Assembly: GCA_044892525.1 (NCBI GenBank)
Contig: CM097885.1
Span: 121,830,001 to 121,894,000, forward strand
DNA length: 64,000 nt
Direction: 5' to 3'
Origin: Schmidtea polychroa
Taxonomy: Eukaryota
In this document: positions 29,501 through 53,412 of the stretch, one piece after another
How the letters are laid out: each line of letters begins with the position of its first letter
Position numbering within the stretch: the stretch's first letter is position 1
Notes under the pieces: model-generated
The model's input: only the letters and a program-made list of their open reading frames with translations
Told to the model about the DNA's origin: nothing
The model's database searches: none
Program-made: the position numbers and the translations under genes

Positions 29501-32500
29501 ATAGAATATTAAAATAAATTTATTAATTATTTAATAAGCATTTTTCTCTTGGTAATTTTCTAGTTTAGCATCACAAATTATTTAAACCATATTTTCCAAT
29601 TACTCATTAAAAGGTATTTAATAATCAATAAAAATAATGGCTGGTGTGACAAAAGAAACTGTACCAGTTATACAATTGTTGACCGATTTCTAGATTATTG
29701 CGGAAGTTAGAAATATTTCGTTTCTACTACTAGAAATTGATACTAAGGAGCACTGTTTGTAGTGGTTGGACGGCTGCCGCTTGGTCATGAACACGTGTTT
29801 TTGATGGTTGTCATCAACATGCTTCGCTAGTAAATTACACTCAAGGAATCGGTGGATATCGTTGGTGATGCCAGGACTGAAACTTCAGCAAATCCATTCG
29901 AACCAGTTGGTTTTTCTGCTATCCAATTTAGTTCGATCATTTTGCAAATATTTTTTGCAGTGATTTCTAATATTAGGAACACTTCCATCCAATTGGTTTT
30001 CCTATCTATAATTATTAGCAGGCAGGGAGTTTGTTTATTTTTTCGTTTTGTTTGGATTTGATTTGATTCAATTCGATTATTTCTCCGAATTCCAGGCTGT
30101 TTATATCGCTTTCGATTCTGGAAAGAGCCCCTGCTGCTATATTTGATTTTCCCGCTACGTAGTTGAATTGTGAAATGAAATTGATTTGTCTAATTTGTAT
30201 TGGTGAAGGGTTTTTCATTTCGATTGCATTTGTTAGCGGTTTGTGATCCGTGAATATTTTGAAGGTTCGTCTTTCGAGTAAATGTTGAAAGTTTTCGATT
30301 GCTTCATGTATTGCTAGGGGTTCTCTGTCGAAAGTCGAATATCTCGTTTGGTGTAACGTTAGTTTTTTTGAGAAGAATCCTAATGGAAGTTTGCCGAATT
30401 TGTTTTCTTGATAAATGGTTGCGCCCATTGCATAACCTGAATAGTCTGTTGTTGGTTGGTAACCGAGTTGGATAACCGAATAATGTTGCCGTTGAAAGAT
30501 TTTCTTTGGCTTTCTTGAATGTATCGGATGTTTCTTTTGTCAGTTTATTGTGACGTTTCGTTTTGTTTTGATAATGTCATTTAGTGGTGCTAGTAGTTTA
30601 CTAAAGTTTGAGATGTAGGATTGGTAAACTTTTACAATTCCTAAAAGACTCCTCAACTCTCTTGTGTTTGTTGACAGTTTGTAATTTTTTATGTTGTTTA
30701 TTTTATTTTCAATTGGTTGTGTTTCTTTGTCATTTAGTGTGTGACCAAGGAAGTTTATTTCTGTTTTATGAACACTTTCTCCACATCTTTTATGTGTGTT
30801 TCTTTGTCTGGGCTTGTTATTAGGATGTCGTCTTGGTAAGCGATTGTGTTTTTGTTTTTTATTGTTTGGTCCATGAATCGTTGGAAAGTTGGTGCTGCGT
30901 TTCGCAAACCGAAAGGCATTCAATTGTGCTGGAACATTCCGATCGTTGTTGTTATTGCTGTTTTTAACGTCTTGTTTTCTGATTAGGATCTGATGATATG
31001 CTTTCTGCAAATCTATTTTTGAAAAGTATTTTGCGCCGTTTTTCTGGTTATTATGTCTTTTATTATTGGTAACGGGTAGGTGTTTGGCTCTGTTATTTTG
31101 TTCGGTAGTCTGTAATCGCCACAAGGTCTCCATTCACCATTAACTTTTTGTTTTAGCATCAGTGCTAAATACCATTTTGAGTTTACCAATTTGAGTTTAC
31201 CATTTTGTTGAAAAAGTATTTTGTGATTTCTATTTTTTTTGAAAGTAGTGGTCTTACTTTTGCATGTACTAGGTTTCCGTTTGTCAGTATTGCGTGTCCA
31301 GAAGTTTGTTCTGACTTATTGTCGAATTGGACTGGTTCCATTAGTTTGTATCCTTTTAGAATTTTGTTGATTTCTGGTGTAATTTAGTCTAGATTAGTTT
31401 TGTTTTTTATATTAGAGGTTATGACGCCTATGTTAATTTTTGGTTTCTCTCTATTCCTCATGCTGTGTTGTCATGTTGTATTAGTGTTTTCTAATATTTG
31501 TTTGTTTTTGCAGTCCACTAGGAGGTTGTATCTTGTTAGGAAATCTGCTCCTATTATTGCTTGTTGAACGTTATTGTGAATGTCCAGTTGTAGTTATTTA
31601 TATTCAGATTTAGTGTTTGTTGCCTGAATGTTTTAATACTTGTTCTGTTAGCTGTCGTTATTATTTGTATTTTTGTACATGTAGTGGGACAACAATGAGA
31701 TCACCGAACCGGTGTCTATTAAGAATTCTGTGTTATTTTTGTGCACCAAAAATGTGTTGTTTTTGTCACCTAATGTGGGTGCAATCATTTGTGACTTTTT
31801 AATTTTCCTGATCTATCTTGTGATAATCGCAGGGTTTCACGCATTTGTATTCATTGTCTCCGAATTTGTTATGGAAATAACAATGGAAATAACAATGATT
31901 TGTAATTGTTGTATCTGTTTGGATAATTTGACCGGTTTCTGTAGTGATTGCTTAGAGATGTAGTTTTGCCTGTTTTTCCGTCAGATGATTGGTTGTAGTT
32001 TTATTTGTTATGATTGCCTGATGTTTGGTTTGTGTTGTAGTATTGTCTATTGTATACGTCTGTAGTTTGGTTTGAATTGAAATTTTGTCTGTTGTATTTC
32101 TCTTTTATTTCGGCCAGTTCTGTTTTTATTTGTCGGTTTTTGACACTTATTTCATCGAATTTGCTAATTAATGTGTTTATTAGTTTGTTTGATATTTCGT
32201 TTGATTCAGTATTTTTGTTGTTTGTCTGCTTGCTGTAATTTGTTTTGTTTCTGCTGTAGTTTCGAGTACTAGAAATTGTAGGCTAGATTTCCTTGTTTAT
32301 TATGTCTGTTATATCAACAAGTGTTTCGACATTCGCATTACTGTTAGTGGCTAGAATGCGCCTGATTTCGGGTGGCATCGCGCGCATAAAAAATTCTTTC
32401 ATTTGAGCCGGAGTAGGAAATCTGTGGGATTGTAGACCCTAACTGCGTATTGTTAAGGCACGATTCAAGCATTTGCCTTCTGTTGATTTTGTTTTTGTTA

Positions 32501-35500
32501 ATGAAAATATTACACAGTTTTGCGAAAGGGTTATCGTTTTTTTGAGATCTCATCTATTTTGTCGGCGATTTCATTTAGTTTGTTGTTAGGGAGTGCAGCT
32601 ATTATGTTGGAACATAGGGGTTTTGTTGATTTGACTCGGGATAGCGTTAAGGTTAATTTCGCAAATTCTAACCATTGTGGACTATTCCGTCATATCTGTG
32701 CGTCAGCGGAATTTTTTTCAGACATTTCTGAGTGGAAGAATTATGATTTTCTTAAATAAACACGTGTTGTCTTATATATCTTTTAGTTATTGTAAAAAAT
32801 TGGTTAAAATAATTTGGAACGCTAAACTAGGCTAAACTAATTACCTTTATCTTATCAACGATTTAACTCTTCGATACTTTTTTAAAAATATTCGTTCGTT
32901 TATCGAAATGTTCAAATTCTCTAGTTAGTTATATTTTAAGAATTTAATAAATAAATATTGAAACTCAGAAACTCAAAAAATTATATTTTCGAAGTAAAAC
33001 AAACTTATAAAGATGCATATCCATGGGATTTCCCATAATTTAAAAATTATTTTATTCGTCTTCAACATTTTATTTATCAACGGTAATCACTTTTCCTCGA
33101 AAAATACTATTTTTTGAATATTTAATTAGTTTTTAATTTAGACATTTTTGGATAACTCCAACAGTATGAATACTACAACTACTGATTGCATTTGTAAATT
33201 TAATATAATTAACATAATTCTCTTATTTCCAAATGGTTTTTCATTTCTAATATTGTTTGCAAATTGTCTCTTAAAATTTAATTGTTACACAAATGATGAA
33301 AATTTTGCAATTGTTTTTACATCCTTTTATAATAAGAGATATTTTAATCCACAATTTCTATAATAACAATCAAAAGGAAAATACTTAGAACAATTACATT
33401 CAATTTTATTATTTTATTTTCAAGAGATCTCTAATTTCCCAAATTCCATTTAAGACGTTCGCTGCCGAGCGACATTTTCACAAACTGGTGAAATTTATGT
33501 GCAAGATATTGAATCTTAATAATTTTTAATTACTTTATTATTTTTTAGTCAGTTTTTACGGCAATAACTTTTATGACACTACTTTTTTTAATCGTATGTG
33601 ATAATTAAAAAATGTTCTAAGACTTTACTGGTAGCTGGTGCCTAATACACCCATTCCTAGCTTAACAAAAATTCTTTTTACTAAATTTCACTAATGTAAT
33701 TGCAAAATCACATAATAAAATTTCGATTTACGAAAATTTTTTACATACATATTTTACATTTTTGAATTTATTTCGTAAAGCGAGTGATAGATGTAACCAA
33801 CTTCGACATACGAGTTAATTCATAGTCTGTCGTAAATGTGTTGGTCTTTGAAAACGTTTATTATTATACTAATTGATGCGTCAGTGCCCCAAAATATTAC
33901 AAATCCATAGCAAACTTTTTTCTGATATTTATTAGAGATTTTGATAGAATTACAAAATAGGAAAAATAATTGTTGAAGGCGTAAAATGATTGGGGTGAAA
34001 TAATTGTGAATGAATGGGATATTTGCCTGGAATTCGGTAAAATAAGAATGGAAGAGAAATGTTGAAAAATGAGAAGGGAACAGAAGAAAATCAATAAAAC
34101 AGATAATTAAATAAAAGGTCATTCTTAGTTAATAAGTACAAAAGGGAAAACAGAAAGCAAAACAAAGTTGAATTGACTAGTTATCTCGATGGCCTCCTCG
34201 AGATAGAGAGAGAAAAAACCCAGGGGAATCCGAGAAACTAGATTATGAAAAATGAATATATCTCTATTGGTGTCAGAGATTACTGAATGCCAATGGAAAA
34301 AAGCGGAAAATAAAGAAGGAATTATCAATAAGTGACATCAAACGGAAAAGTATAAAAACCGAACACAAAATGACAATAATGAGAAAAAATTGTTATTGAA
34401 AGTGAGAATTGCTAGCGAAAAGAGAGAATTATTGGTAAAGGAGGAAAATTGACACGAGACAGACTGATGATAAAAGAGAGAATTTGTTAAAGAGGAACTA
34501 GTGCATTGAACCAATAAACCAGGGGTAGTTTAGAAACTCAAGTTAAGTCAAAGCAACCAGATCAAGTTACCAATCGTAATAGTCAATAGGTCGTGTTCTT
34601 AAAGGATTGTCATTTTTTGTGCTATTCTTCCCCAAGGATTGTAATAAACATTTAAAACAGTTGAAGTGTATGAAAGTTAGTATCATTAATCAATAAAGTT
34701 TTGCGTGTTGGGATTGCCTTTTTCGTTATTAATAATACGCACGGAGTCAGATAAGTAATTGGCAGTTGACAGTCACCGACCAACTACAATAAACCCAACG
34801 GAATTTAAAATTAGAATTACAAACTTATTATTCATTTCACTCATTATACCAGCTAGGTAAGAAAATAAACAAATTAATATTGTTTTTAAAATCATTTTTC
34901 CTAAAATTTGTAATTCACTTAAATAGTTTTCAATTATACTGTTGATTTAAAAATATTAATTAAGGATATGAATTGTTTAATTAATTTATTAAAAATTACT
35001 AAATCATTGAATTTTAGAGCTTCATAATTTAGGATTAAATCAAATAGCGAACTCTTAAATGCTTTAGAAAATGAAATAACTAAATTGAAAATAGAAAATG
35101 GTAAGGTTAATCATAATTTGAATGTTAACAAATATAATTTAGAAGCAATTTCAAAAAATAATATTATTTTGAAATCCAGTAATACAGATCTCAGGGAAGA
35201 AACAGTAACAACTAACTTTTTTCAAAGTTATATTAACCTTTACACAGGAAAATCAAATACTTGAAATTAATAAATTGATCAATAATTTGACTGAAAGTAA
35301 AATTCAAATGGAAACTTTAAACGACATTATCAAGACTCTTGATGGTGAAAATGGAAATTACAAAGTTTATATAAATAATGGAATTTTAACATTTATTATT
35401 TTAAGGATTCCATCCAAAGATTGATTGAGGAAAAACAAACAATACACAATGAATGCAATGCAATTCAAAAAAACCTAATTGATACTCAAAATAAAAATAA

Positions 35501-39725: not shown

Positions 39726-40690
39726 TGTTGGGTTCAATAGGAACCGGAACCAAAAGTTTTGGAATTAAATAATAATTAATTAAAAAATAGTATTTAAAAA
39801 TTACCTAAAATAGAAAACAATTACTAAAATTAGAATTAAAATATAAATAGTAATAAACAATTACTAAAAATAGATTTGTAACAAAAATAGTAATTGTTTA
39901 AAAATATATAATAAAAATAGTAATTAAATAATTACTATTAATAGATTAAAATAAATAAAAAGGTATAAATACCAGTCGAAAAGTTGAGCTCAGGTACGGA
40001 AAAATAGGACGCGACAGAAAAGATTGAGAATTAATTGAAAGAAACTGTTATAAATAGATAAAGATTTTCTCGCATTTAGTGGTAGAAAATTTACATTGGA
40101 ATTTATTTCTAATTAATAACTGCAAGTCTGACTTGATATTCAATTATCGATTGGGAAAAAATTAACAAGTATTTTGGGATTTTCGCATCATTTATACAAT
40201 AACTTAACTCCAATACCTATTGGAGTATTAATTAAAGAAAAAAAGGAGGATAGATTTTTAGCAAGCTCAACAACCAATCTGTGGTTTATTTTGCTCTATT
40301 TTTGGAATATTAGATAGTTAGTATTATTATTGTTAACGTCATCACATATTTTTGTAGCTGTTTCGTTTCAAACAAAATTTAAAGTGTTAACCATTTTCTC
40401 CGTTGACACTATCGCGGTTAAAATTTGGTAAACATCCCTATCTCTTTCGTTCACCTATATCGGGCTGTTGGCGCATTTGGGCCAGCCTTGATTCTTAGAT
40501 ATACTCTTTAGGGCGGTTTGTATAACCGTTTTCTGTTCTTTAGGGTGCAGCTAGGTTGTTTTTGTATTATAAACAATTGTGTATAAATTATTTACTTTTA
40601 ATAAATATTTAAATTATATTCGTTATTTATTTACCTAGAGTCAGATAAACGTTTTGTATTAGTTCGACTACATACCCATCGAACCTAACA
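39726..40690 (+). repeat. 5' LTR of element 1 (965 bp)
   Basis: TG...CA ends with 9 of 10 inverted terminal match; directly followed by TTT and the PBS. Confidence 0.85.
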
Positions 40691-40693
40691 TTT

Positions 40694-40711
40694 TGGTGAG
40701 CCCGGCGTGAT
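40694..40711 (+). promoter_or_regulatory. tRNA-Trp primer binding site
   Basis: TGGTGAGCCCGGCGTGAT matches the complement of the canonical eukaryotic tRNA-Trp 3' end (ATCACGTCGGGGTCACCA) at 16 of 18 positions. Confidence 0.8.
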
Positions 40712-40777: not shown

Positions 40778-41368
40778 TTGGATAATCAAATGGCAGAAGA
40801 AGCTAATGTAAACGCATTTGCCAGATATCGCGCTCTGCCCGTAAAGGTATTCAGCGGTGATCCGGGAGAATTCCCAGAGTTTATGTCTGAATATTATCAG
40901 ATGGCAAAGGCATATGCTTATCCAGATAATATCATGATACAAAGGCTACCCATATATCTGAAGGGGCTGGCAAGAGAAAAATATAATGACATTACAGCAT
41001 TACCAGTTGCTCAAGTACCAAAAACATGGGCCGAAATGAGAGAACAAATGACTGTTCGAATATTGCTCGGAGATGCGGGAAGAATATTTAGACAACAATC
41101 TTACCATCGAAAACAAAATGCCAATGAACATGTGGGGGAATTTGCACACCAGTTATCATTTATTGCCGAAAGTGCATTTGGTCCGAAAACCACATGGGCA
41201 AAGCCAACAGAATTGTTAGTTAAGGATCAACTATGGGCAGGACTTACTCCTACAATGAGGAACGCCCTAATACTAAACACTAGTGATGATTTTGATGAAT
41301 TAACACGGAAAGCTGTCGTAATTGAAAGCAGCTTGGAAAAGTCAACCATGTTCCTTGTAAACAGTTAG
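40778..41368 (+). CDS. Gag capsid-like N-terminal part of element 1
   Basis: LPVKVFSGDPGEFPEFM...RLPIYLKGLAREKY...YHRKQNANEHVGEFAHQL is typical Gypsy-type Gag and aligns with the ORF at 50667-51167. Separated from the downstream frame by a stop and a frameshift. Confidence 0.8.
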   Translation: MDNQMAEEANVNAFARYRALPVKVFSGDPGEFPEFMSEYYQMAKAYAYPDNIMIQRLPIYLKGLAREKYNDITALPVAQVPKTWAEMREQMTVRILLGDAGRIFRQQSYHRKQNANEHVGEFAHQLSFIAESAFGPKTTWAKPTELLVKDQLWAGLTPTMRNALILNTSDDFDELTRKAVVIESSLEKSTMFLVNS

Positions 41369-41381
41369 AGAACACCGGTAG

Positions 41382-44300
41382 TGTTTCAATTGCCATAGAA
41401 AAGGGCATATAGCGAAAGATTGTACCAGCAGGAAAATTATGGACAATCGTAAAAGTATACAATGTACCAAATGTGGATGGAATAACCACGGTGCGGAAAA
41501 CTGTAGAGTACAGAATTTGCAATGTGAGAAATGTAAACGAAAGGGACACGTTGCTGCAGTCTGTAAGACTAGAAGCTCTCAGAACAGCAATAATTTTAGT
41601 ACGGTTAAAAGAGATGATGTAAATTCATCGGGAAAGATAAAATGTCACGGATGTGGGAAATTCGGACATATGATGAGGTCATGTCCTCAGAATCAGAGTG
41701 GAAACACGGGTCAGTTCAATAAAAATACCGATAAGGGTAATGTGAACAAGCCTAAGACGACTTTTATGGTTAATCAGGATCAAGGGTTAACTTATCTGCA
41801 ACAATTGGAAATGGAAATCCAGGAGGAAAAGAATAGGTTGGCTAGATTGACCGACCAAGAAGGCACCATCTTTAAGGTAGAAGTTGGAAGAGATGAATTT
41901 CTTAAAAAAAAGGACTCCATTAGAAAGGACCTTCAGGAAACGGAATCAGAGGAGAGTTCCGATGATGAACCTAGTATGGCCACCATACTAAGCGAGTTCG
42001 ATAGAACCTTTCCAGGGAAAGCAAAGGTAAAAGGAGGGTCAGATACCCTAACAAAATGTTTAAAACTGGTGGATTCCAGATATGAGTACCAGCAGAAGCT
42101 GGCCAGACAATTGGAAAAATTGACAGAAACAGAGATTAAAATTCACGAAATCGATACAGTAGTAAAACTGATATCGCAGGTCGAAGATGATCCAAAGTAT
42201 CATAACGACACGTACAAAATCCTAAGGAAATTAGGAAAACTCATGGAACATGAATGGGACCTCCAAGATGCCCAACTCAATATAAAACTCCCACAGGATA
42301 AAGAGTATAATCTCGATATAAACTTAAGAAATCGAGCCGATAAATTAACGGAAACATTGACAAGTATTAAGCATCAAGGATATGACTTATACTTATGTGG
42401 AATAAAATTAGAAGCAAACCAAACACTTCTACAGAACGGGATACTCCCAGGTAGAGTGACGAAGCTCACAGCAAAGAGTGCACCGAAGCCAGTGGCAGTA
42501 ATGGATCAATATAGTGTATTCTTGATTACTCAGATGGAAATAGAGAGATTGGAGGAAACTCAACAATTAACCCAGCGACTAGGGTTAGAATTGCAGAAAT
42601 CACCACGAGATGGAGAAACTATAAAGGAAATACTTGACTGGATGTTAGTATTACGAATACCAGTAGATTTGTTGGAAGCAATAATTCCACTTATTCTACC
42701 AGTGGTAAAGGAAACAAGCCCATTCCAGACGCAAATAGAAGCACTGATGAGGAAAAATGGGAAAGCTATCCGAAGTCAGCCTGATAGACAAGGCAACATT
42801 AATCTAGACGTGCGAATCATGGGAAAAGAACCATTAACAATGATTTATAATTGTTATATCAAGGTTAAAATATTAAGGAGAGATGTGATTGCCACCGATC
42901 AAACTACAGGTATATTCCTGATAATTGTCCATGGTAGGCAAGTGGATGATCACGAATATCTAGTGGATGTGGGTTGTCTACCGTTAGCAACAACCACGGT
43001 AATGATCATCCCAGTAACTCCACCCGAGTCCCAGTGGTCATTAATGAGACTGCCAGATATAGCAAACGAAATTGCGGAAGAAATCGAGGAAATAAGGCTA
43101 GAGGAAATTAATCCCTGTCAAATGGTGGACATTGACGAGGAAGATTACTTCTCAGAGTATGTCAGATTAAACCCAGGAGAAACAAACCTAGGAGCTACTA
43201 CGTCACAAGCGGTAACAAATCCGGAGACAGAAAAACCCCCGGAGAAAGTGAAAAAAGATGGACGAGGACGTCCTAGAAAGGATCAAATGAAACCTCCACC
43301 CAACGAGCAGTTAAATCCGGAAACGATTCGGAAAATTCAGCTAAAAACATTAGCAGGGATAGCTCAAGAAGTGGACGGCCAGGCGGAAGATGAGACAACG
43401 CCAGAGAGGTCGTTATTGTGGCAACGTATACAACAAATGATCGGGATTATCAGGCCCGAATGGAGAATTCCAAAGATCAAGGGAATCGAAGTAAAGAAGA
43501 TAACGAAAGAGGTTAAGAAGACAATGAATAAAGTATCCAAAGACGTATCAACTGGAAATATTCAGGATGCCATAGAAGCATTCGTACAGCAAGGATTAAC
43601 AAGAGGGAAAGTGGTAACATCGCTTTCACTGTTAATTCAACATGCCTTAGTCCGAGCAGGGGACGATAAAAAACTTATAGAACGAGAAATCGATCAAATA
43701 GTCGAAATGGTAGATTATTACCTTGAGGTATGGATGACCGTAAACAAATTTTGGGAAAAGGAAATGATCCCAAAACCACGATATGAAGTCGTGGAAGAAG
43801 CCATAGATAATGGTAGTCCAGGCACAGGAAACATGACAAGCATGATCCTGATGTTTCTAGTAATGATGGGCATATTAAAACAAACAAATTCACTAACAGT
43901 ATTTGACTGTGGAAATCCTAAACTATCTCGGATATATTCGCTAGTAGATGCAATTGAGTGCAAAGAGGCGTATCCAGAGAAGGTTCATCAAGGGGAAAAG
44001 GTAGAATATTACGTCTACCAAGAGAGTGAATTTTATAGAACCACGATAAAGGAATGTAGAATTCAGAGAGCTACATTTGAATATTATTGCGGTAGTAATA
44101 GCTATTCTGCTTTTCTATCTGCAACATTAATACCAAGGCCAGTAAACATAATGCCCGAAGATTGCCTAGATGCATTTCGAAAAGGAAGCGTGAGGATAGA
44201 TAACGAGGTATCAATCTCGGCAGAAATTGGGAAAACATTGGGAATAACAATCACTCGAGGAGGAACAATTGCCTCAGGTGGAACCGGCAAAGGCAGAAAG

Positions 44301-45482
44301 AAAATTCGCGGTAGTAATTTAGTTTCCTATGTGGTAGACATAGAAGATTACTCAGTAGAGCTACGAGAATATGAGGGAACATTCGATGTGGCCACAGGAA
44401 AATTGATGGCACATCCGCAATGCAATGCCAAGTTCGGTAGTTGTAAAACGGGAACCACTACATTAATTTACGAACAAATGAGAGATCATTGTGAGTTGGC
44501 TTTCCTCAAGAAAATTCCTTTTAGAAAATTAAATGGAACTAAATACCGAGACTCCCAGAATCCAGAAAAGGTGTGGGATAAAGCAAAAACGTTGAAGAAA
44601 ATCAACAAACAAGAGAAGAAAGATATCGGAGAGGAAAACACACCTCTAGTGTTGATATTGGAAGAAGAGACGGACGCAATTCGATTCTTCCGAAAAGATA
44701 AAAAGACTAAATGTGGGAAAAGAGTATACGAGACGAACTACAAAGGAATTTTCCTGTCAAGAGAATATATTCGAAATTCCAAGATCCTACATGTAAAGGA
44801 TATCAAAATCACGAATTATATTAATAATAAAGTAGATTATTTATATCATGACCTGCAAGGACAAATGCAAGATATGTATCAAGAGGTGATACTAAACAAT
44901 TGCAAGCTTAATCGTGAAATAGTCCGAAATAGATTAGCAATATCTATTGTTAACCCAGAGTTGGTTACTCCAATGTTATTAGAAGATGGGATGTTTGGCA
45001 GAATCATGGGAGAAGCTATATATAGCTATGAGTGTAAACCAGTGGAAGTACAATTAGCCAGATTTAATCAATGCACTCTGGAACTGCCAGTATCCTATCA
45101 AGGAAAATTGAGATTTGTCATGCCAGTAACCAGAAAGTTACTTGAAGAAAACGCTAAACCTCAACCAGCAATATGCAACCCGGCAATATCACCGTTATAC
45201 AAAATAAATGACATGTGGATATCTTTGCCGGAAAGAAAACCATCTACACAACGAGTAGAGACCTTGGAGGTAACTAAATTAAAGGATAATATGGGATTCA
45301 AGTCATTAGATGAATTAGCTAAAGGAGGGATTTACACTCCCGATGATATCGAAGAAGCAAGAAGGACACTGCTATTTCCACAAATCAGAGACAGTGGTAT
45401 CACGGAAATTATAAGAACAATTTATTATGATATTTTAATACGACCAGAAAACCAATTTATTATTTGGTCCGGAACACTATAA
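41382..45482 (+). CDS. Polyprotein: 4 CCHC knuckles, UBL-helical-UBL, AT-hook, signal peptide, chuvirus-like glycoprotein ectodomain
   Basis: Frame open from 41382 (CFNCHRKGHIAKDC, upstream of the annotated ATG at 41439), then CTKCGWNNHGAENC, CEKCKRKGHVAAVC, CHGCGKFGHMMRSC. UBL-like segments at about 42270-42476 and 42795-43013; GRGRPRK at 43260-43280; hydrophobic MILMFLVMMGILKQTNS followed by LTVFDCG at 43893. No protease, RT, RNase H or integrase motif. Confidence 0.8.
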   Translation, partial: CFNCHRKGHIAKDCTSRKIMDNRKSIQCTKCGWNNHGAENCRVQNLQCEKCKRKGHVAAVCKTRSSQNSNNFSTVKRDDVNSSGKIKCHGCGKFGHMMRSCPQNQSGNTGQFNKNTDKGNVNKPKTTFMVNQDQGLTYLQQLEMEIQEEKNRLARLTDQEGTIFKVEVGRDEFLKKKDSIRKDLQETESEESSDDEPSMATILSEFDRTFPGKAKVKGGSDTLTKCLKLVDSRYEYQQKLARQLEKLTETEIKIHEIDTVVKLISQVEDDPKYHNDTYKILRKLGKLMEHEWDLQDAQLNIKLPQDKEYNLDINLRNRADKLTETLTSIKHQGYDLYLCGIKLEANQTLLQNGILPGRVTKLTAKSAPKPVAVMDQYSVFLITQMEIERLEETQQLTQRLGLELQKSPRDGETIKEILDWMLVLRIPVDLLEAIIPLILPVVKETSPFQTQIEALMRKNGKAIRSQPDRQGNINLDVRIMGKEPLTMIYNCYIKVKILRRDVIATDQTTGIFLIIVHGRQVDDHEYLVDVGCLPLATTTVMIIPVTPPESQWSLMRLPDIANEIAEEIEEIRLEEINPCQMVDIDEEDYFSEYVRLNPGETNLGATTSQAVTNPETEKPPEKVKKDGRGRPRKDQMKPPPNEQLNPETIRKIQLKTLAGIAQEVDGQAEDETTPERSLLWQRIQQMIGIIRPEWRIPKIKGIEVKKITKEVKKTMNKVSKDVSTGNIQDAIEAFVQQGLTRGKVVTSLSLLIQHALVRAGDDKKLIEREIDQIVEMVDYYLEVWMTVNKFWEKEMIPKPRYEVVEEAIDNGSPGTGNMTSMILMFLVMMGILKQTNSLTVFDCGNPKLSRIYSLVDAIECKEAYPEKVHQGEKVEYYVYQESEFYRTTIKECRIQRATFEYYCGSNSYSAFLSATLIPRPVNIMPEDCLDAFRKGSVRIDNEVSISAEIGKTLGITITRGGTIASGGTGKGRKKIRGSNLVSYVVDIEDYSVELREYEGTFDVATGKLMAHPQCNAKFGSCKTGTTTLIYEQMRDHCELAFLKKIPFRKLNGTKYRDSQNPEKVWDKAKTLKKINKQEKKDIGEENTPLVLILEEETDAIRFFRKDKKTKCGKRVYETNYKGIFLSREYIRNSKILHVKDIKITNYINNKVDYLYHDLQGQMQDMYQEVILNNCKLNREIVRNRLAISIVNPELVTPMLLEDGMFGRIMGEAIYSYECKPVEVQLARFNQCTLELPVSYQGKLRFVMPVTRKLLEENAKPQPAICNPAISPLYKINDMWISLPERKPSTQRVETLEVTKLKDNMGFKSLDELAKGGIYTPDDIEEARRTLLFPQIRDSGITEIIRTIYYDILIRPENQFIIWSGTL

Positions 45483-46120
45483 AGAAGCAGCAAAGAACGT
45501 AATGATGAAAATATGGGAACGATTTACCAATTTTGGTATTTTCGTCGCCGGATGTTCAGGAATCTACGCAGTATTTGTAATTTTAAAGCTGATAATTACA
45601 CAACTAATGTCAACATATAGCATATTCAAAATTGGGAGATGGTATTGGAAACTGCTATTAGGATTATGTCCTATGTGTGCAGAGTTTGCATTATTCAAAC
45701 ATCACAGAAAAGAAATTAAAGAAATTAGACAGAAACATTTGGTCAAGCATGAAGTAATTGGAACAGAAATGGAGGAGTATTCTAGTTATCGGGACGATAA
45801 CAATTCAAAGGGAGGAGGTAATGGAGGCTCTCGTGAAACATCTTCAAGACAAAATCAACCACGAAAACAGAACTACAACAAAAAACCGACTCACCAACAA
45901 AGAAAATCGAGATTTAAGGAATATCTCCCTCCATATGACCAATCAAAGGAAATCTACGTGAGAAGACAGTCATCAGAAGGAGAATATGACAGTTCCGACC
46001 AAAAATTCGACATAAGATCACCCAGATTCAAGAGAAGTCCAAGATATGTACAATTGCCAACTTTGAGGAGTTTACCATCCGCACCAAACGATGGGCGGGA
46101 ACATTCAAGGGAAACAACAA
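45439..46120 (+). CDS. Env membrane-proximal region, transmembrane anchor and cytoplasmic tail (frameshifted from the main ORF)
   Basis: LLFGPEHYKEAAKNVMMKIWERFTNFGIFVAGCSGIYAVFVILKLII fits the membrane-proximal plus TM pattern of chuvirus-like glycoproteins; the frame runs into the 3' LTR remnant. Confidence 0.7.
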
Positions 46121-46146
46121 CGACTACATACCCATCGAACCTAACA

Positions 46147-47542
46147 CAGGTTTCCTCTCGGTTTTGTTCAAAGATCTTGCTTCGCTAATTCAAAACTAAT
46201 CAACTTTATTGATTTTGTTGAGGATACCTAAATAATAAATTTAAATAATTAATAAATGCGTAAAATGATTGGAGGGAAATCATAATAAATGAATGGAGTG
46301 TTGTCCTAGAGCACAGTAAAATAAGAGTAGAAGAGAGATATTGAAAAATCAGAAGAACACAGAAGAAAATCAATAAAAACAGACAATTAAATAAAAGAAA
46401 GTCATTCTTATTTAACAAGTACAAGCATAAAAGAAGCAAAACAAATTTAAATTATCTTTTTATCTCCATGGCCTATTTGAGATAAGTGTTGAGGTCCTTA
46501 AATTAAAATAAATTTAAATGAAATTTAGGTTAATAATCTAAATAAAAAGTAAGTGAAGAAAAAAGACAAATAAAAGCGTGATCATGCACAGAATCGATAG
46601 TAAAGGAAAGTGTGATTCAAGCAGTATTAGAAAATGCCAAAAGCAATTACGAAAGGCAAGAATCCGAAAATCCGAGAAAAATCAATAAATTGTAAAATTA
46701 TCGAAATCGAATTGGGAAAACGGGACAGGTATAGAGTAGCTAATGGTCAACAAGATGATGGTTAGGGATTTATCAGAAAATGGTTAGGAAGGGTCGAAAA
46801 GCATCCAAATGTGTAAAAACAGAAAATGTTGATTTATTAATTAATTGGCTAATAGAAAACCTGAGCTAATGGGAAACCCGAGCCAGTGAGAACCCGAGAG
46901 ATGAAGGAAACCCGAGCTGGGTAAACAAGAAGAAAAGTAAACAGAAGGAAGATTTGGGCCCATTAGCTTGACACAATGATTAATTGGAAAAGAGCAAGGA
47001 GAAGATAGTGCGTGTAGAAAGGCCGGAAGGGCCATTAATTATCTTAGCTCGTTGGACCATTATGGGTGACAGCCGAAGCAGATACGTGGAAGCAAATGTC
47101 AAATGAAAGATTGGCTTGGCAATAACCATTTATCATCCCGATTTCGAGAAGTATATAAGGAAAGGGAGAATCAGAGCAAATCGGCATTTTGCCTCAGGTT
47201 GGGTAAGAAGAAACTGAGCTTAGGAAAAGGCGAAAACGAATCTAGATTAAGGAAAAAGAAGAGATAGAATAAGAATAAAAAGCGTGAAAAGGATCAAATC
47301 AAAAAGAGAAAAAAGGAAAACGTTGGTCAAGAGAACCTAAGAAACTAAAAGGTGAATATTATCTTTATCAAAGCATCAACACCGAGCGGAGAACCAGTCA
47401 AACGGAACTTTGATTATTAATTGTAAAGTGGTGATAAAGGATTGTGAATTTATTATTTCAATATACGTTGGGTCGTTATTGTTTGATTTAAAGGACACGA
47501 GGAGTCAGAGGGAACCGACTTAAAGTAATCTAAAACCCAACA
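46147..47542 (+). mobile_element. Solo LTR of a sister family, interrupted near its left end (about 39700) by element 1
   Basis: Ends AAAACCCAACA; aligns with the inverted LTR at 51327-52215 (AATATACGTTGGG...ACACG.GGAGTCAGAG...AAAACCCAACA and the AACCCGAGC repeat block) and with 33900-34200. Confidence 0.7.
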
Positions 47543-47629
47543 TAAGGATAAAGGAACATGGGAAATCCGAAAGATGAGATCGTCAAAAATATATAAGTAA
47601 TGATATTACTTTATAGGTCAAAGACCAAA

Positions 47630-48855
47630 TGTGAAGCAGTTCAGAGTATATTGCGTAATTCAATACAATGTGTTAGTTATTACGCAATATACATTACTAT
47701 TTAAGAGTGATCACTCTATGTTAATGTAAATAAATCTTTAGATGGAACCAATTGTTGTAACTGGTGACCACGCCGAAAATGTTCACACAATGACGACTCG
47801 AGGAGAAGGGAAAAAGTCTGCAAGAGTCTCACTACCGAAACGTGCGCAAGAACTCTTGGATATGGAAACTAGAAGATACGACTGCAGATGTACCAAGGAA
47901 GCTGAAAAATGGATATAGGCAATTAATGATTGGATCGCTAGGAATGATTTGAAGAGGACAGAAGCATTTGATTTTCTCCTTTGCGATGAAGTGGCTACGC
48001 TGTGGAAAAATTTCAAAACAGAAAAAACAACAGATAAAACAGCTAAAGAATGGTTTTCCGAAACATTTACAATTAAATTGACTATTATAGACAAGATTAA
48101 TGAACTTGCTGCAATTAGACAAGAGGAAAATGAGAGATATTCTACCTTCGAAATCAGGGTATTAAAATTAGTGAGTGAAGTTATTAATTCAGGAATGAGG
48201 GTAGAGGAGATTGCCAATGAAATTATAACTGGACGAGTCAGAGATAGAAGATTAAAGGATGTTCAAACAATAAAACCAACGATGACAGCAGAAGAACGAA
48301 ATCAACTGGCCAAAATTTACGAGAAAGTGGAATCAAAAGAAAAGACAGAAGAAATTATGGTAATAAAGAAGAGTAGTTACGCGGAAGCAACAAGAAGAAG
48401 GAATTCAGAAACGTTTGCAAGAGAAACAAATGGAAGTAACACCAATGTATTAAGAAGCCAAGGAAATTACAGAAGAGAGAATTTACCAGATAATTCATAT
48501 AACAGAAATAACGAAATGAATCATACAGTCGAATGGAATGTGCAGAGAAGGACACCGATGGTTTCACTTAAACACATCGCCAAAAGATTATAAAATCGAT
48601 CTCGAGACCTTCCTGATCCAAGAAACGGCTAATTAAAGCCAGGCCAATGTTTTTTCTGTGGAGAATATTGGCATAGAAGATATGAATGTCTACTAAAAGA
48701 TAAATGTTTGATATGTTTTCCGTGATTGTTATTTATTAAGAAAGAAAGAACAACAGAACTATGAGAAAAAGGAAATGATAGCTTGTGTGCATGACGAAGA
48801 AAACGGAAGAAATTACTCGTATGATGCAGAAACAAGAGAATCAATTAATGATTAT
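47630..48855 (+). mobile_element. Truncated LTR retrotransposon 3 (unrelated family): short LTR, PBS and gag pseudogene
   Basis: About 130-bp LTR-like segment, PBS-like TGGTGACCACGCCGA at 47762, gag-like frame from ATG 47790 with internal stops and knuckle CFFCGEYWHRRYEC at 48648. Confidence 0.6.
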
Positions 48856-48859
48856 GCAA

Positions 48860-51800
48860 TTCATGATGTGGAAACTGAAAAAATTACTTCATGTAAAATT
48901 TTGTTTTTTGACCCAAAACCTTTCAACTCAGCTTCATTTAGCTCCTCAGATAATTCAGTTTTAATTACTCCAATCTCATCATCTTCCTCTTTTACGATTC
49001 TAGGCCAGTAAGTTACAATAACCTCGTTTTCAGACATTTCATCCTGTGGCTTCGTTGCATAAACATTATTTATGTAATTTGTATTAAATCCGCAATTAGC
49101 TAAATTTTCGTCATCGTCTAACTCTATTCCTTTGTAAGTCAGTACAATAATCCCATTATTTCCCATTGTTTCTGCAGCTTTTTGTCGTAATTTTGACACC
49201 TTTACGCTCCAGTGCTATTGAAAGTATTCAACTTTTCCATCAATATTTGGAGCTATCATTAATGATTTCGAATTACACTCCGGTTCTCTGTAATCATATT
49301 TTAAGTTCCGTAGAATTTCCTTTAATCTGGTTTGATATTTCGTTTTTTTATGAATATGCGGCAAAATACGTTCGAACAGCTTCTCTTTATCTTTTCCATT
49401 CATTTTTGAACTCATCACTAATTCAAGACATTTATTGATCTCGTCCTCATCAACGATATATAACATGTCTCGCAAATTCCTTAGGGTTTCGTTCCAATTT
49501 TTAAAATCTGAATTTGAATGATTAAAAGTATCCAAAATATTTACCTCATTTTTCAATCAGGGATTAAACCACAATCTACCAAGTATTCCGCATCCTTCAG
49601 TTTTCCCATTTACCGTTGTGTCAATTTCACGCTACCTTTATTGTATTTAGCCAGAATAAGCATTGTCAAATCTTTGATTTGTCCATAAGGATTGATAGAA
49701 AATTGAGCTTTAATACCATTGATGTCTGTGGTCTCCACGATAATATTATCCAAATCGTTTTTGGATCTTAATGCTTTTCCAAATGTTCTCATTAATTTAG
49801 CAATTTCCTCATCTTGGAGTATGCTGTAAAGCTTAGAACATAAGTTCAATGCACTTTTCAATTTCTTATGACTAAGTTGGATCTGACTTAACTACGTAAC
49901 CCACTCTTTCAATCTTGGATTGTTTGTTTCCATATTTTGAGCCATCTTTCCATTTTATTTAATAACAACGTAGCCTTTTGTTCAACAAGTCATTTTTTAC
50001 TTTATTAGCAAAGTTTTCCGAAATATTTTCGTACGCCATATAAGAGTCTGCTCCGTCATCAAATTCAATTTTCGACATCAACTTGTCTAATTTTTTCTCA
50101 TTTCTCGAACTTCATTTTCCATCTTTTCTTTAAAGTCGTCTTTTTGAGCATAAGCTACATTGGCATTGATTGATTCATCTTGAAATTTACTTGATTTCTT
50201 GGGATATCTAGAAGGTGATATAGTTCTTGAAAAACAATTTCTGCTAATGTGGCCCATTTTTCCACATCGATAACATTCAATGTCACCATTGTTTGGCTTA
50301 TTTTCAGTAAATCTATCTTTGGGACTCATATTTCTACCATTTCTGAATCAACATTGATTTGAATAATATCCAGGCTTCTTGCAAAACTCGCATACAATAT
50401 TATTCAATATCTCGTTTATTTGATTACTAAAAGTTGCTTTATTAACTTCCAATTTATTACCTAATCTTGGAGAGCTGTTTGATTTAATTGGTTCTTTTGA
50501 TTCCCATTGATTCTTTACTGGAGTTATCGCCCTTTCTCTTTTCTCGGCATTTGCGGCAAATACTTCAGATTTTCTGGTACTTTTTAAATTCAATTCAATT
50601 TTCATTGCTTTCTTCACGAGTTCATCGAAATTCGAAAAATCTACGTAGCATAGTGCTTTTTTTATTTCAGGATGGGCTCGTTATAAATTGATCTTCTAGC
50701 AGTTCTCTGACTTGTTTCACCATCTCCACTTGTTCAGGCTTTGCTTCGAAGGCTTTGTCTGCTAAAGTCGTTAAATGGAATGCGAATTCACTCAACGATT
50801 CATTTGGATTTTGTACTCTGGCATAAAATTTTTGTCGCATTATCCTTTTAATATCGCCTCCCACCAATTTCATTGCCATAGCGTCTTCGAGTTTGGCCCA
50901 ATCATTTCCAACTGTCTTTCTATCTACTTGCTGCCAAGCTTCTCTAACAGCTCCTTTTAAATAGAGTGGGAATCTTTGTACCAATATTGATTGTGACCAC
51001 CCATAGGCCGAAGCGTACATATAACAATCGCCCATGAAATCGGCAAACTCAACCGGGTCTCCTCCATACTGATTCACCGGTAATTTTTGACAACTGGCAA
51101 AATCTATCATCTCTGCGTTCTCTCTGGCCATCTTTACTTTTCGGTTTCTCAAATTGTATTCACTCATTGCTAAATATTAAAATTAATAATCAATAATTAC
51201 TACCTCTTTCAAATACCCCGATTTCCAATTATTTTCAAATTTTTATTACTTTAATTTTCTTCACCTCTTTTCACTCTTCAATATTCGCCCACCAACGTTT
51301 GATCACGTCGGGCTCACCAAAATATATGTTGGGTTTTATGATATCAAAATCAACCGTTGGTTACTCTGACTCCACGTGTTCCAAAATCAATAAACACAAA
51401 CTCCCAACGTATATTTGTTTTATAACAATTCACAACTCTCAACAATTAATCACACTGTCGGTTAATCACAATTCTCACACAATTTCAGATCGGACTCCGC
51501 TCTGGAAGGTCTCAACCTCGTACGATTAAAAAATTAGGTTTCACCTTTTGATTTAGTTCCACTCTCTGATCCAATCTCCTTTGACGCTTCTTGTCTAACT
51601 CTTCAGTTTTTCCTATAATTCTTTTCTTCTTATATTCTATTCCTTTAACTCCTAATGTCGTTTTATTCTTCCCTACCTAAGGCTATTGCCCATTATGTGA
51701 ATTTTAAGTTTCCTTATAATCGTTGTAATTGCCCCATTTTTGACCTAATTGGTTTTGACTTCTTTAGTTATCATTCCCTAATTGGCTATTTCTTTTGACC

Positions 51801-52215
51801 ATCTTCGTAATTCCCCTTCTTTTGTTTACCCTTGTTTATCCGGTTGTTTGGATAATTGCCCTCGAGTGCCTCGTTTTTTTACCCTTCCAAATTTCCGTGC
51901 TCGGGTTTTCTTCATCGCTCGGGTTATCCATTGGCTCGGGCTTTCCATTAGCCAATTAATTAATTAATTAATATTTTACGTTTTTCACATTTGTCTATTT
52001 TACGACCCTTTCTACACATTTTCTAACAATTTCTTCTTCACTATCCCCTAATCTACCTCTCTCCCGTTTTCCAGCTTCAATTTCGATAACTTTTCACATC
52101 ATTCCACTTCCTCAGCTTTGCACATTTTTCCATTTTATGTCTGATTATAACCCTTTTATAGTTCTGTTTTTATCATATCTTTCTTTACATTACTTCTCTG
52201 CTTGACCACCCTTTG
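48860..52215 (-). mobile_element. Truncated LTR retroelement 2, same family as element 1: LTR, PBS, gag, knuckles, UBL-helical-UBL
   Basis: LTR 51327 to about 52215; gag 50667-51167 homologous to 40778-41368; knuckles CEFCKKPGYYSNQC and CYRCGKMGHISRNC; UBL-like segments 49556-49747 and 49053-49265; several stops and frameshifts. Confidence 0.8.
51302..51319 (-). promoter_or_regulatory. tRNA-Trp primer binding site of element 2
   Basis: Minus strand TGGTGAGCCCGACGTGAT matches the complement of canonical tRNA-Trp 3' end at 17 of 18 positions. Confidence 0.85.
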
Positions 52216-52437: not shown

Positions 52438-53412
52438 ATGTTAACTAGAAGCATTATAGATTTTTACGATAATAAAGCAATTTTTATAACTGGTGTTACG
52501 GGATTATTAGGTAAATCAGTTATTGAGAAATTATTAAGATCAGAAGGCGCATCAGTAGCCGAAAGATTTGCCAAGCTTATATCATCAGACTTTCCCGATT
52601 TAGTCAGAATAGAAAATCCCAAAGCACTTAATAAAATTACAGCATTTGCTGAAAATGTAACTGATGTTAATTTCGGTTTAAATTATAACGGTTTAAATGA
52701 ATTATTAAACAATGTATCTGTTATCATGCATGCTGCTGCCACTGTCAGATTTAATGAGCCGTTAAAATTGACGACAGAAATGAATGTAATACCCGTTATT
52801 AAGCCGATGGAAACGTGTCATCAAATGAAGAATCTTGAAATTTTAATCCATGTTTCAATATCGCATGTAAATTATGATATGGAATTTGTGCATGAATACG
52901 TTTATCCGCCATCATTAGATCCTTATAAGGTTGTCGATATCGTCCAGTACTTGATTGAGGATCTGGTCAATCTGATCATTCCAGATATGTTGAAAAACAA
53001 ACCAAATACTTATACATTCACGAAGCAATTGGCTGGATATACTATTCAGCAAAACATTGATAAATTACCATTAGTGATCGTTCGGCAATCAGTTATTGGA
53101 GCTTCTGTCATTGAACCGTTTCCGGGTTGGACGGATAATTTTAATGCAGTTACTGGACTTATCGCCGCTATCAGCAAAGGTATGCTGAGGTCAATGATGG
53201 GAGATTATATCAAGTCCACCAATATCATCCCGGTTGACACAAACGCCAATTTTATAATTGCCGCTGGCTGGTATTCTGATGGTACATATGTTATTAAATT
53301 AGCAAATGAAAATGTCCAACCAAATGAAAAGGCCACCAAACAAGAAGAAGCCGACTACGACACCCTTCAATTTCGGTTTTCCTTTTACTCGGAACTATTA
53401 GATTTGATATAA
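52438..53412 (+). pseudogene. FAR: Intronless, truncated fatty acyl-CoA reductase copy
   Basis: FYDNKAIFITGVTGLLGK Rossmann motif, HAAATVRFNEPLK, catalytic NTYTFTK, IVRQSVIGAS..EPFPGWTDN...IIPVD. About 15 aa missing after KLLRS; no C-terminal Sterile domain; no introns. Confidence 0.8.

Follow-up and report, generated by a model that had tools for sequence, protein, structure and literature searches.

Genes and features of the locus

The window analysed here is the whole stretch of 64,000 nucleotides from Schmidtea polychroa, an invertebrate with an AT-rich genome. An endogenous retrovirus-like element lies on its plus strand, and a further, more heavily decayed member of its family lies on its minus strand. 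A fatty acyl-CoA reductase ORF is also present; it has one match at 66% identity, and its best named matches, from rotifers at 43%, are not diagnostic of the host. The features discussed below, with the evidence for each in brackets, are as follows.

40694–40710, plus strand: PBS-like sequence beginning TGG, just 5′ of gag (read from the sequence)
40778–43832, plus strand: gag, broken by one frame change (frame translation, knuckle scan, relatives)
40796–41233, plus strand: CA-like Gag core (BLASTP against the minus-strand element's Gag ORF, 38% identity, E 8e-34)
41382–41684, plus strand: four CCHC zinc knuckles, nucleocapsid (regular-expression scan of the frame; weak Pfam match to zf-CCHC_6)
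42270–42476, plus strand: UBL1, a probable ubiquitin-like domain (profile comparison, AF2, PDB matches)
42477–42794, plus strand: helical spacer of four predicted helices at codons 357–386, 392–404, 409–422 and 430–446 (AF2, pLDDT 79–91)
42795–43016, plus strand: UBL2, a predicted ubiquitin-like beta-grasp domain without a C-terminal Gly-Gly (profile, AF2, Foldseek)
43833–46188, plus strand: env, class III viral fusion glycoprotein, broken by one frame change (Pfam PF24664, hydrophobic segments)
46573–47544, plus strand: 3′ LTR-like region of the plus-strand element (69–72% identity to 51325–52214 in the minus-strand reading)
48861–51323, minus strand: second element of the same family (tblastn, ORF list, HMM, Gag identity of 38%)
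51325–52214, minus strand: 5′ LTR-like region of the second element (similarity to 46573–47544)

Apart from the single frame changes in gag and env, the plus-strand copy has lost its pol gene: no pol was found 3′ of env in the window, and the copy is without PR, RT, RNase H and integrase. Because pol is absent at this position, the copy is a deleted, non-autonomous member of the Ty3/gypsy GAG-ENV-POL group; since it is defective, none of its genes need be expressed. We put at slightly better than even our preferred explanation as a whole: a defective Ty3/gypsy-type endogenous retrovirus-like element, from a family with the gene order GAG-ENV-POL, whose Gag would carry built-in ubiquitin-like domains that serve as a ubiquitin mimic.

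The termini of the plus-strand element appear incomplete. A matching 5′ LTR was looked for in the window and none was found, and an exact repeat of 26 nt and a repeat of 240 bp, considered as an ordinary LTR pair, do not behave as the LTRs of this element. The region similar to its 3′ LTR (51325–52214) adjoins the PBS of the minus-strand element, where a 26-nt PBS block recurs at 51298–51323 (minus strand, 92% identical), just 5′ of that element's gag. The minus-strand element consists of this PBS and a gag with a CA-like domain, knuckles and the helical and UBL module. Stops or frame changes interrupt it at least five times, and the search for env or pol in this element found neither.

Gag of the plus-strand element

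The initial annotation had read the frame as the Gag of an LTR retroelement with four CCHC knuckles upstream of the UBLs, and this reading holds: the knuckles are found at 41382–41684 in the same frame, together with a CA-like domain, a PBS-like site and, in relatives, a Ty3/gypsy-type RT-RNaseH-integrase. The element thus possesses a Gag with a capsid-like core and a CCHC nucleocapsid. The order within the protein is CA-like domain, four knuckles, helical stretch, UBL1, helical bundle, UBL2, an acidic and proline-rich linker, and a C-terminal helical region.

Three of the knuckles (C-x2-C-x4-H-x4-C) lie downstream of the first ATG, and the fourth just upstream of it within the stop-to-stop frame. 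Pfam matches to zf-CCHC are present in a close relative (P0001), and two others (P0009 and P0011) match both Retrotrans_gag and zf-CCHC weakly. The CA-like core itself has no match in Pfam and no sequence match in the PDB. Between the knuckles and UBL1 lies a stretch that had been described as coiled or helical; its last helix before UBL1 is modelled, and the remainder of that description is a reading of the sequence alone. Relatives of the C-terminal region after UBL2 are confined to the window's own subfamily. Single-sequence searches of Pfam and the PDB with the region between the knuckles and the glycoprotein returned nothing, and this region could be resolved only by profiles and structure prediction.

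Predicted ubiquitin-like domains and helical spacer

Translation places the two peptides singled out by the initial annotation at codons 278–346 (nt 42270–42476) and 453–525 (nt 42795–43013), exactly where it had located them. It had taken both for ubiquitin-like domains, expecting two beta-grasp folds on structure prediction. For UBL2 the likeness goes beyond chance and the fold prediction is confident; for UBL1 the likeness is suggestive and less certain than had been implied, with a low pLDDT and weak Foldseek E-values.

UBL2 is very probably a ubiquitin-like domain integral to Gag. When a profile of 10 divergent sequences (A3) was searched against the PDB, about 40 of the 47 listed matches were UBLs, the best being the Ubiquilin-2 UBL over the full domain length (E 7.4e-4). 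The AF2 model has a pLDDT above 90 and the canonical order b-b-a-b-b-3_10-b, that is, a predicted beta-grasp fold, and its best 50 Foldseek matches in the PDB are all ubiquitin, ISG15, NEDD8, SUMO or UBX domains (TM up to 0.87, rmsd 1.5–2 Å), with some 10–20% identity between UBL2 and these ubiquitin-family structures. Against BFVD, the best matches are nearly all ubiquitin-like proteins or polyproteins known for ubiquitin insertions.

At the level of sequence, the match of UBL2 to known UBLs is borderline. The Pfam ubiquitin family model PF00240 (gathering cut-off 25.4 bits) does not match the window sequence, and the relatives score 14–17.5 bits, below that cut-off; two of the 10 members match, with a best E of 8.5e-5. 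The domain also has a family-specific conserved motif, D-D-x-E-Y-L-V-D-x-G-C, which occupies the loop and the 3_10 helix that lead into the last strand.

UBL1 is, with rather less assurance, a likely ubiquitin-like domain of the same integral kind, and probably represents a duplicate of UBL2 that has diverged. The UBL2 HMM matches it at an iE of 0.038 and also recognises the equivalent domains of P0001 (0.028) and P0006 (0.038); when the UBL1 and UBL2 profiles are aligned with hhalign, P is 1.3e-4 across 70 columns. In the two-domain AF2 model it appears as b-a-b-b-3_10-b at pLDDT 50–68, the first strand not being predicted. Modelled alone from only four sequences, UBL1 reaches a pLDDT of 43 and Foldseek E-values of 0.18 or higher, with 48 of the best 50 matches ubiquitin-like. 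Its best PDB sequence matches are UBLs at weak E-values of 0.26 and 0.32. The search of the PDB with profile A5 was flooded by zinc-knuckle matches because two full-length relatives stood in the alignment. UBL1 is absent from all four relatives with genomic context (L001–L004).

The spacer between the two domains, likewise recognised in the initial annotation, is predicted as four helices with a pLDDT of about 80–90, the last three of which are conserved together with UBL2 in all relatives (alignment A4). As had also been noted, neither domain ends in diglycine: no Gly-Gly follows either of them in the window, and none is present in the nine aligned relatives. Judged from this missing end, the UBLs would be integral parts of Gag, neither cleaved off nor conjugated.

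Ubiquilin and UHRF1 UBLs are likewise integral domains that are not conjugated. UBLs of the ubiquilin, ISG15 and UHRF1 type share the beta-grasp and provide the best matches in sequence and structure, at borderline E-values. Unlike ubiquilin- and UHRF1-type proteins, the window family has its own acidic-Tyr-Leu motif, and no UBA, STI1 or RING domain was found.

Relatives and conservation of the module

The helical and UBL2 module is very rare: only 16 representatives were recovered from 1.84 billion protein clusters. A word-indexed protein search with the segment gave a single close relative, and the A3 profile gave no match there. Within the window, the A3 HMM also matches the minus-strand element (E 2.8e-9 and 5.4e-4), which in addition touches PF00240 (E 0.036). 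Four of the representatives (L001–L004) lie in Ty3/gypsy elements ordered GAG(UBL)-ENV, three of which continue with one or more PR domains and two (L001 and L004) with a Ty3/gypsy-type pol including RT-RH-IN. In the relatives, between two and five retropepsin-like domains follow one another in tandem; these domains also touch the Ddi1-type Pfam model PF09668.

Amino-acid identity within the family is 18–50%, and UBL2 is shown to be conserved across very divergent elements. For each of the 21 pairs compared, synonymous difference (0.67–0.92, saturated) is larger than non-synonymous difference (0.36–0.58); with synonymous sites saturated in every pair, dN/dS is not estimable and the inequality alone is given.

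These relatives bear on the possibility that the likeness of the segment arose by chance, or that the segment is a one-off captured fragment of a host gene, and that it has no function. Although the Pfam ubiquitin model falls below its cut-off on the window sequence and the copy is defective, for UBL2 this very improbable reading is contradicted by the 16 representatives, by conservation in at least 10 divergent sequences from several samples, by the second copy in the window, by non-synonymous change well below the saturated synonymous level, and by the confident predicted fold.

Envelope gene and gene order

The gene directly after gag encodes a class III fusion glycoprotein with a signal peptide, an ectodomain, a transmembrane segment and a cytoplasmic tail. 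It matches Monjiviricetes_fusion (PF24664) at E 4.8e-67, with a further match of the membrane-proximal part at 4.2e-8, and shares 39% identity with its L001 counterpart across 510 residues. The same order is found in L001–L004. The upstream part of env is in frame with gag; Gag and glycoprotein share one frame at two of the five loci (the window and L001), and in L002–L004 the Gag-UBL ORF stops before the glycoprotein ORF.

Ddi1 consists of a UBL, a helical domain and a retropepsin. The window lineage resembles it in having a UBL beside a helical domain and, in relatives, retropepsins that touch PF09668. In contrast to Ddi1, the helical bundle precedes UBL2 instead of following it, and in relatives the UBL and the proteases have a whole glycoprotein gene between them. 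The proposal that the module sits directly ahead of protease, as in Ddi1, is not supported: a class III glycoprotein gene follows in the window and in all sufficiently long relatives. Protease follows in three of the four relatives with genomic context and RT in two, with the glycoprotein gene intervening. A Ddi1-like layout was rejected for the window element, which has no protease, and no Ddi1 UBL is among the PDB matches.

To our knowledge, the Gag proteins of the recently described GAG-ENV-POL elements have not yet been dissected. These "ancient errantiviruses" are Ty3/gypsy elements in which gag and pol flank a class III env (Chary & Hayashi, eLife 2026, PMC13524379). They share with the present family an invertebrate host, a tRNA-type PBS (here a PBS-like sequence), the order gag, class III glycoprotein, pol, and a Ty3/gypsy pol (here seen in the relatives). 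They differ in that their envs are labelled HSV/gB-type, whereas the present env matches a Monjiviricetes (rhabdovirus/chuvirus-like) Pfam model, and the window copy is without pol and 5′ LTR. The word ubiquitin does not occur in the text of PMC13524379, where the GAG-ENV-POL order is published.

Another comparable element is Anakin, from mosquitoes (Dezordi et al. 2020, PMC7642597), also an LTR retroelement with a glycoprotein, captured and chuvirus-like, of the same broad Mononegavirales/Jingchuvirales class III kind. Unlike the present family, Anakin belongs to BEL/Pao and has the order gag-pol-env, and its description contains no mention of a UBL or zinc-knuckle extension. The view that UBLs are not standard components of Gag agrees with the literature, in which we found no report of such Gag domains. 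A UBL in Gag is apparently a rare, undescribed feature.

Possible role of the UBLs

The initial annotation had suggested that the module could recruit proteasome, ESCRT or deubiquitinase machinery, or act as a decoy. Short peptide late domains borrow host ubiquitin ligases. As permanent parts of Gag on the cytosolic face of the membrane, the UBLs could act instead as a ubiquitin mimic encoded in cis, which host proteins with an affinity for ubiquitin would bind. The likeliest partners would be ESCRT-I and ALIX, where Gag and glycoprotein assemble, and the UBL would then do the job of a peptide late domain in the release of enveloped particles. We propose this late-domain role for the UBL only tentatively, and by analogy with ubiquitin fused directly to retroviral Gag, which is a transferable, Tsg101- and ALIX-dependent late domain (Zhadina & Bieniasz 2010, PMC2958808). 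In both cases a ubiquitin fold is permanently and covalently joined to a retroviral-type Gag. The engineered fusions, however, carry true ubiquitin and were made in the laboratory, whereas the window UBL is natural, lies inside Gag and not at its end, and would have such activity by analogy.

The window, L003 and L004 each have a Gag-UBL ORF free of P(T/S)AP, PPxY and YPxL motifs, which, coming from three ORFs, is weak evidence. The tail of the window glycoprotein contains PSAP and YPSNL, and L001 has YPDL; these motifs could supply late-domain activity without the UBL, an observation that counts against such a role for the UBL itself. A mimic of ubiquitin is likewise disfavoured by the most conserved residues, E-Y-L-x-D-x-G, which are family-specific and could mark a different partner.

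One such alternative is that the UBLs are structural adaptors outside the ubiquitin system, which bind the glycoprotein tail, the nucleocapsid or RNA and couple Gag to the envelope. There is a parallel in some viral replicases, whose integral Ubl domains have viral binding partners. This reading, which we regard as possible if rather unlikely, fits the conservation of a family-specific acidic and aromatic motif in place of the general ubiquitin signature, the constant association of the module with the helical bundle and its position always 5′ of the glycoprotein gene, and the single Gag and glycoprotein frame at two of five loci. However, the interaction is a conjecture, and the beta-grasp is closer to ubiquitin-type UBLs than to other beta-grasp classes.

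It is more doubtful still that the UBLs are directed to the proteasome or p97, in the manner of ubiquilin, Rad23 or Ddi1 shuttles or of UBX domains, and serve Gag turnover, uncoating or retropepsin processing. The best sequence matches are indeed the UBLs of Ubiquilin-2 and -3, FAF1 UBX domains are among the Foldseek matches, and the tandem retropepsin-like domains of the relatives touch PF09668. Yet such cross-matches are usual for any retropepsin, the matches include no UBL of Ddi1, the glycoprotein gene stands between UBL and proteases, and the UBA domain that marks the UBL-UBA shuttles (ubiquilin and Rad23 type) was not detected, the only match being UBA_3 at E 0.29, below any threshold.

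Some viral polyproteins carry ubiquitin insertions as deubiquitinase cleavage signals; that host deubiquitinases cut after the UBLs to free parts of Gag from the glycoprotein is suggested by pestivirus polyprotein fragments with such insertions among the viral Foldseek matches and by the shared frame in the window and L001, but is highly improbable and largely ruled out, as neither Gly-Gly nor a conserved pair of small residues comes after either of the UBLs in any member, and in L002–L004 the glycoprotein ORF begins only after the end of the Gag-UBL ORF.

Implications

Whether ubiquitin itself is the signal that operates when retroviruses bud has been debated chiefly on the basis of engineered Gag-ubiquitin fusions and of ligase recruitment. 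Under the late-domain reading, these elements may represent an enveloped Ty3/gypsy lineage with a genome-encoded budding signal, in which one or two permanent UBLs in Gag engage ESCRT directly and replace peptide late domains; in this full form we consider the proposal somewhat unlikely. If true, it would provide the natural counterpart of the laboratory fusions. A natural family with a conserved, non-removable UBL in Gag, encoded beside env, would amount to an evolutionary experiment on the budding signal, and the UBL would join the short list of Gag building blocks.

Structure of the UBL-bearing Gag

The plus-strand open frame exceeds 1,300 codons and contains both of the peptides that the initial annotation had likened to ubiquitin (here UBL1 and UBL2), downstream of the four CCHC knuckles that it had described. 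Neither peptide is followed by Gly-Gly in the translated frame, in agreement with the earlier reading. The elements are laid out as follows.

Features of the two elements
40694-40710, plus strand: primer-binding-site-like sequence (PBS), upstream of gag
41382-41684, plus strand: four C-x2-C-x4-H-x4-C knuckles, same frame as both peptides
42270-42476, plus strand: UBL1 peptide, codons 278-346 by position check in frame
Codons 357-386, 392-404, 409-422 and 430-446: spacer helices (AlphaFold2, pLDDT 79-91)
42795-43013, plus strand: UBL2 peptide, codons 453-525 by position check in frame
46573-47544, plus strand: 3' LTR-like stretch of the plus-strand element
48861-51323, minus strand: second, more decayed element with PBS, Gag core, knuckles and the helical and UBL module

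In single-sequence searches, the stretch of about 700 residues between knuckles and glycoprotein has neither a Pfam match nor a PDB sequence match. Ten divergent sequences, 24-40% identical to the window, align over a UBL2 domain of about 75 residues that carries the strongly conserved motif D-D-x-E-Y-L-V-D-x-G-C. Its profile matches chiefly ubiquitin-like domains in the PDB: Ubiquilin-2 ranks first (E 7.4e-4, aligned over the whole domain), and ubiquilin-3, ISG15, and UHRF1 follow. When codons 253-540 were modelled with AlphaFold2 from 14 sequences, UBL2 reached a pLDDT >90 with the order b-b-a-b-b-3_10-b; the best 50 Foldseek matches in the PDB are all ubiquitin, ISG15, NEDD8, SUMO, or UBX (TM-score up to 0.87, rmsd 1.5-2 A), and those in the viral library are nearly all ubiquitin-like proteins. 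The family does not reach the curated Pfam cut-off for ubiquitin; sub-threshold PF00240 matches lie at the corresponding position in relatives and in the minus-strand copy. Synonymous differences among seven loci are saturated (0.67-0.92) and exceed the non-synonymous ones (0.36-0.58) in 21 of 21 pairs, a substitution pattern that fits long-term constraint. UBL2 is a real, conserved, integral ubiquitin-like domain.

The helical spacer proposed between the two domains is likewise borne out as four predicted helices. All relatives keep the last three along with UBL2, so the family's conserved unit is a helical bundle joined to a UBL.

Two beta-grasp folds had been expected, and the model bears this out for UBL2, while UBL1 is only probable. 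UBL1 is confined to the subfamily of the window (window, P0001, P0017, and P0006), and the minus-strand copy appears to carry two units as well. In the two-domain model it has the order b-a-b-b-3_10-b at pLDDT 50-68; modelled alone from four sequences it falls to 43, and Foldseek then gives E >= 0.18, with 48 of the 50 best matches ubiquitin-like. Some Foldseek alignments to two-domain ISG15 cover about 230-250 columns, a span in the predicted structure consistent with both domains being matched. By sequence, the best matches in a single-sequence PDB search are UBLs (E 0.26 and 0.32), the UBL2 HMM picks up UBL1 together with the preceding helix in three proteins (iE 0.03-0.04), and profile-profile comparison of UBL1 with UBL2 gives P 1.3e-4 over 70 columns. 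UBL1 is probably a diverged tandem duplicate of the helix and UBL unit.

Between UBL2 and the glycoprotein signal peptide (43017-43832), a linker rich in acidic residues and proline precedes a helical part; relatives are confined to the window's own subfamily (P0002, P0005, and P0015), and the only domain matches are sub-threshold ones to HTH_9 and UBA_3. The identification of the UBL-bearing Gag as a UBL-UBA shuttle protein was rejected.

State of the two copies

Upstream of the peptides, the capsid-like Gag ORF is 38% identical (E 8e-34) to Gag of the minus-strand element. Downstream, the same frame runs through a signal peptide into a viral fusion glycoprotein of class III (Pfam PF24664, Monjiviricetes_fusion, E 4.8e-67), whose membrane-proximal part and tail read on in the neighbouring frame. 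The plus-strand copy is defective: gag and env each have one frame change, no protease, reverse transcriptase, or integrase lies downstream of the glycoprotein, and no 5' LTR matching the 3' LTR-like stretch was found. The minus-strand element shares the PBS of the plus-strand copy; at least five breaks interrupt it, and neither env nor pol was found in it.

An exact 26-nt repeat in direct orientation (40665-40690 and 46121-46146) has one copy adjoining the PBS-like site and the other within the coding sequence for the glycoprotein tail; as the flanks lack similarity on either side, the two copies do not form an ordinary LTR pair, and they may be the scar of recombination or template switching. 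A further repeat of about 240 bp (79% identity) has one copy at 46243-46484, downstream of the glycoprotein gene and ahead of the 3' LTR-like region, and the other at 33964-34205, isolated, 12 kb away, with no element parts adjoining.

Relatives and gene order

An exhaustive HMMER search among 1.84 billion representatives found 16 that match the region of about 700 residues, concentrated on the helical bundle and UBL2. Four have genomic context.

Gene order in relatives
L001: ORF1 of 2,296 codons (knuckle, UBL, glycoprotein, three retropepsin-like domains); next ORF with two more retropepsins, then RT, RNase H, integrase
L002: Gag-UBL ORF, then glycoprotein ORF, where the contig stops
L003: Gag-UBL ORF; glycoprotein and retropepsin ORF; ankyrin-repeat ORF; contig stops before any RT
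L004: Gag-UBL ORF; glycoprotein; retropepsins (with ankyrin repeats); RT-RNase H-integrase

The pol domains (RT_RNaseH_2, Integrase_H2C2, and rve) are of Ty3/gypsy type, and on these domain assignments the family is therefore placed in a GAG-ENV-POL errantivirus-like lineage; published elements of Nematoda, Bryozoa, and Platyhelminthes have this gene order (PMC13524379). The initial annotation had compared the module to the host protein Ddi1, with a place ahead of protease. This comparison fails: the glycoprotein follows the UBL in the window and in all four relatives, retropepsins come after it in L001, L003, and L004, and the layout is unlike that of Ddi1.

Between glycoprotein and RT, relatives have two to five retropepsin-like domains in tandem (L001 8466-13811; L003 7961-14612; L004 11271-14964), with weak ankyrin-repeat matches in these regions of L003 and L004, and this protease region is unusual for a Ty3/gypsy element. 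Upstream of gag, L001 contains a duplicated stretch of 276 nt (97%) and a 51-nt unit repeated in tandem (209-853 and 924-1222), which may be an LTR or enhancer-like structure.

Other features of the window

Outside the elements the window is AT-rich (G+C 24-33%); its hAT transposase remnants and fatty acyl-CoA reductase ORF indicate an animal genome. It holds the following.

11373-15959, minus strand: two adjacent hAT-type transposase remnants (DUF4371 and hAT dimerisation domain) and a C17orf113-like zinc-finger ORF
30045-31213, minus strand: RT/RNase H fragment, about 30% identical to L001 and L004 pol, within strong GC and AT skew (30-32 kb), part of neither UBL-bearing element
47949-48593, plus strand: 214-codon ORF between both elements, lysine/glutamate-rich, no Pfam match; perhaps left over from the gag of another element
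52438-53412, plus strand: intron-free fatty acyl-CoA reductase ORF (NAD_binding_4, E 5e-47); one match 66% identical, best named matches rotifers (43%)
8981-9204 and 63252-63472: repeat pair of about 220 bp, 96% identity, 54 kb apart, unrelated to the UBL finding

Possible role of the UBL

The UBL belongs to Gag and precedes the glycoprotein signal peptide, and therefore lies on the cytosolic side; it cannot be conjugated, nor cleaved at Gly-Gly, and an envelope gene accompanies it at every locus with context. We infer that it may mimic ubiquitin and recruit host ubiquitin-binding factors, which would then help enveloped particles to be released. In experiments, a direct fusion of ubiquitin to Gag acts as a transferable late domain dependent on Tsg101 and ALIX (PMC2958808). 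Canonical late-domain motifs (P(T/S)AP, PPxY, or YPxL) are missing from the Gag-UBL ORFs of the window, L003, and L004, which is weakly consistent with a ubiquitin mimic, whereas PSAP and YPSNL in the cytoplasmic tail of the window glycoprotein (45502-46188) and a YPDL towards the end of that of L001 (ORF1 residue 1536) count against it. As rivals to mimicry, the UBLs may be a purely structural adaptor, or they may dock proteasome or p97. The missing Gly-Gly contradicts a signal for processing by DUBs, and the conservation of the module in the 16 representatives and the second copy in the window contradicts a single capture event.

GAG-ENV-POL Ty3/gypsy elements, to which this family belongs, are already known, as are chuvirus-like glycoproteins in retroelements (PMC7642597). 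Ubiquitin is not mentioned in the paper describing the GAG-ENV-POL order (PMC13524379), and no report of a UBL-bearing Gag was found in the searchable literature; the UBL in Gag appears to be a new feature on a known type of element.
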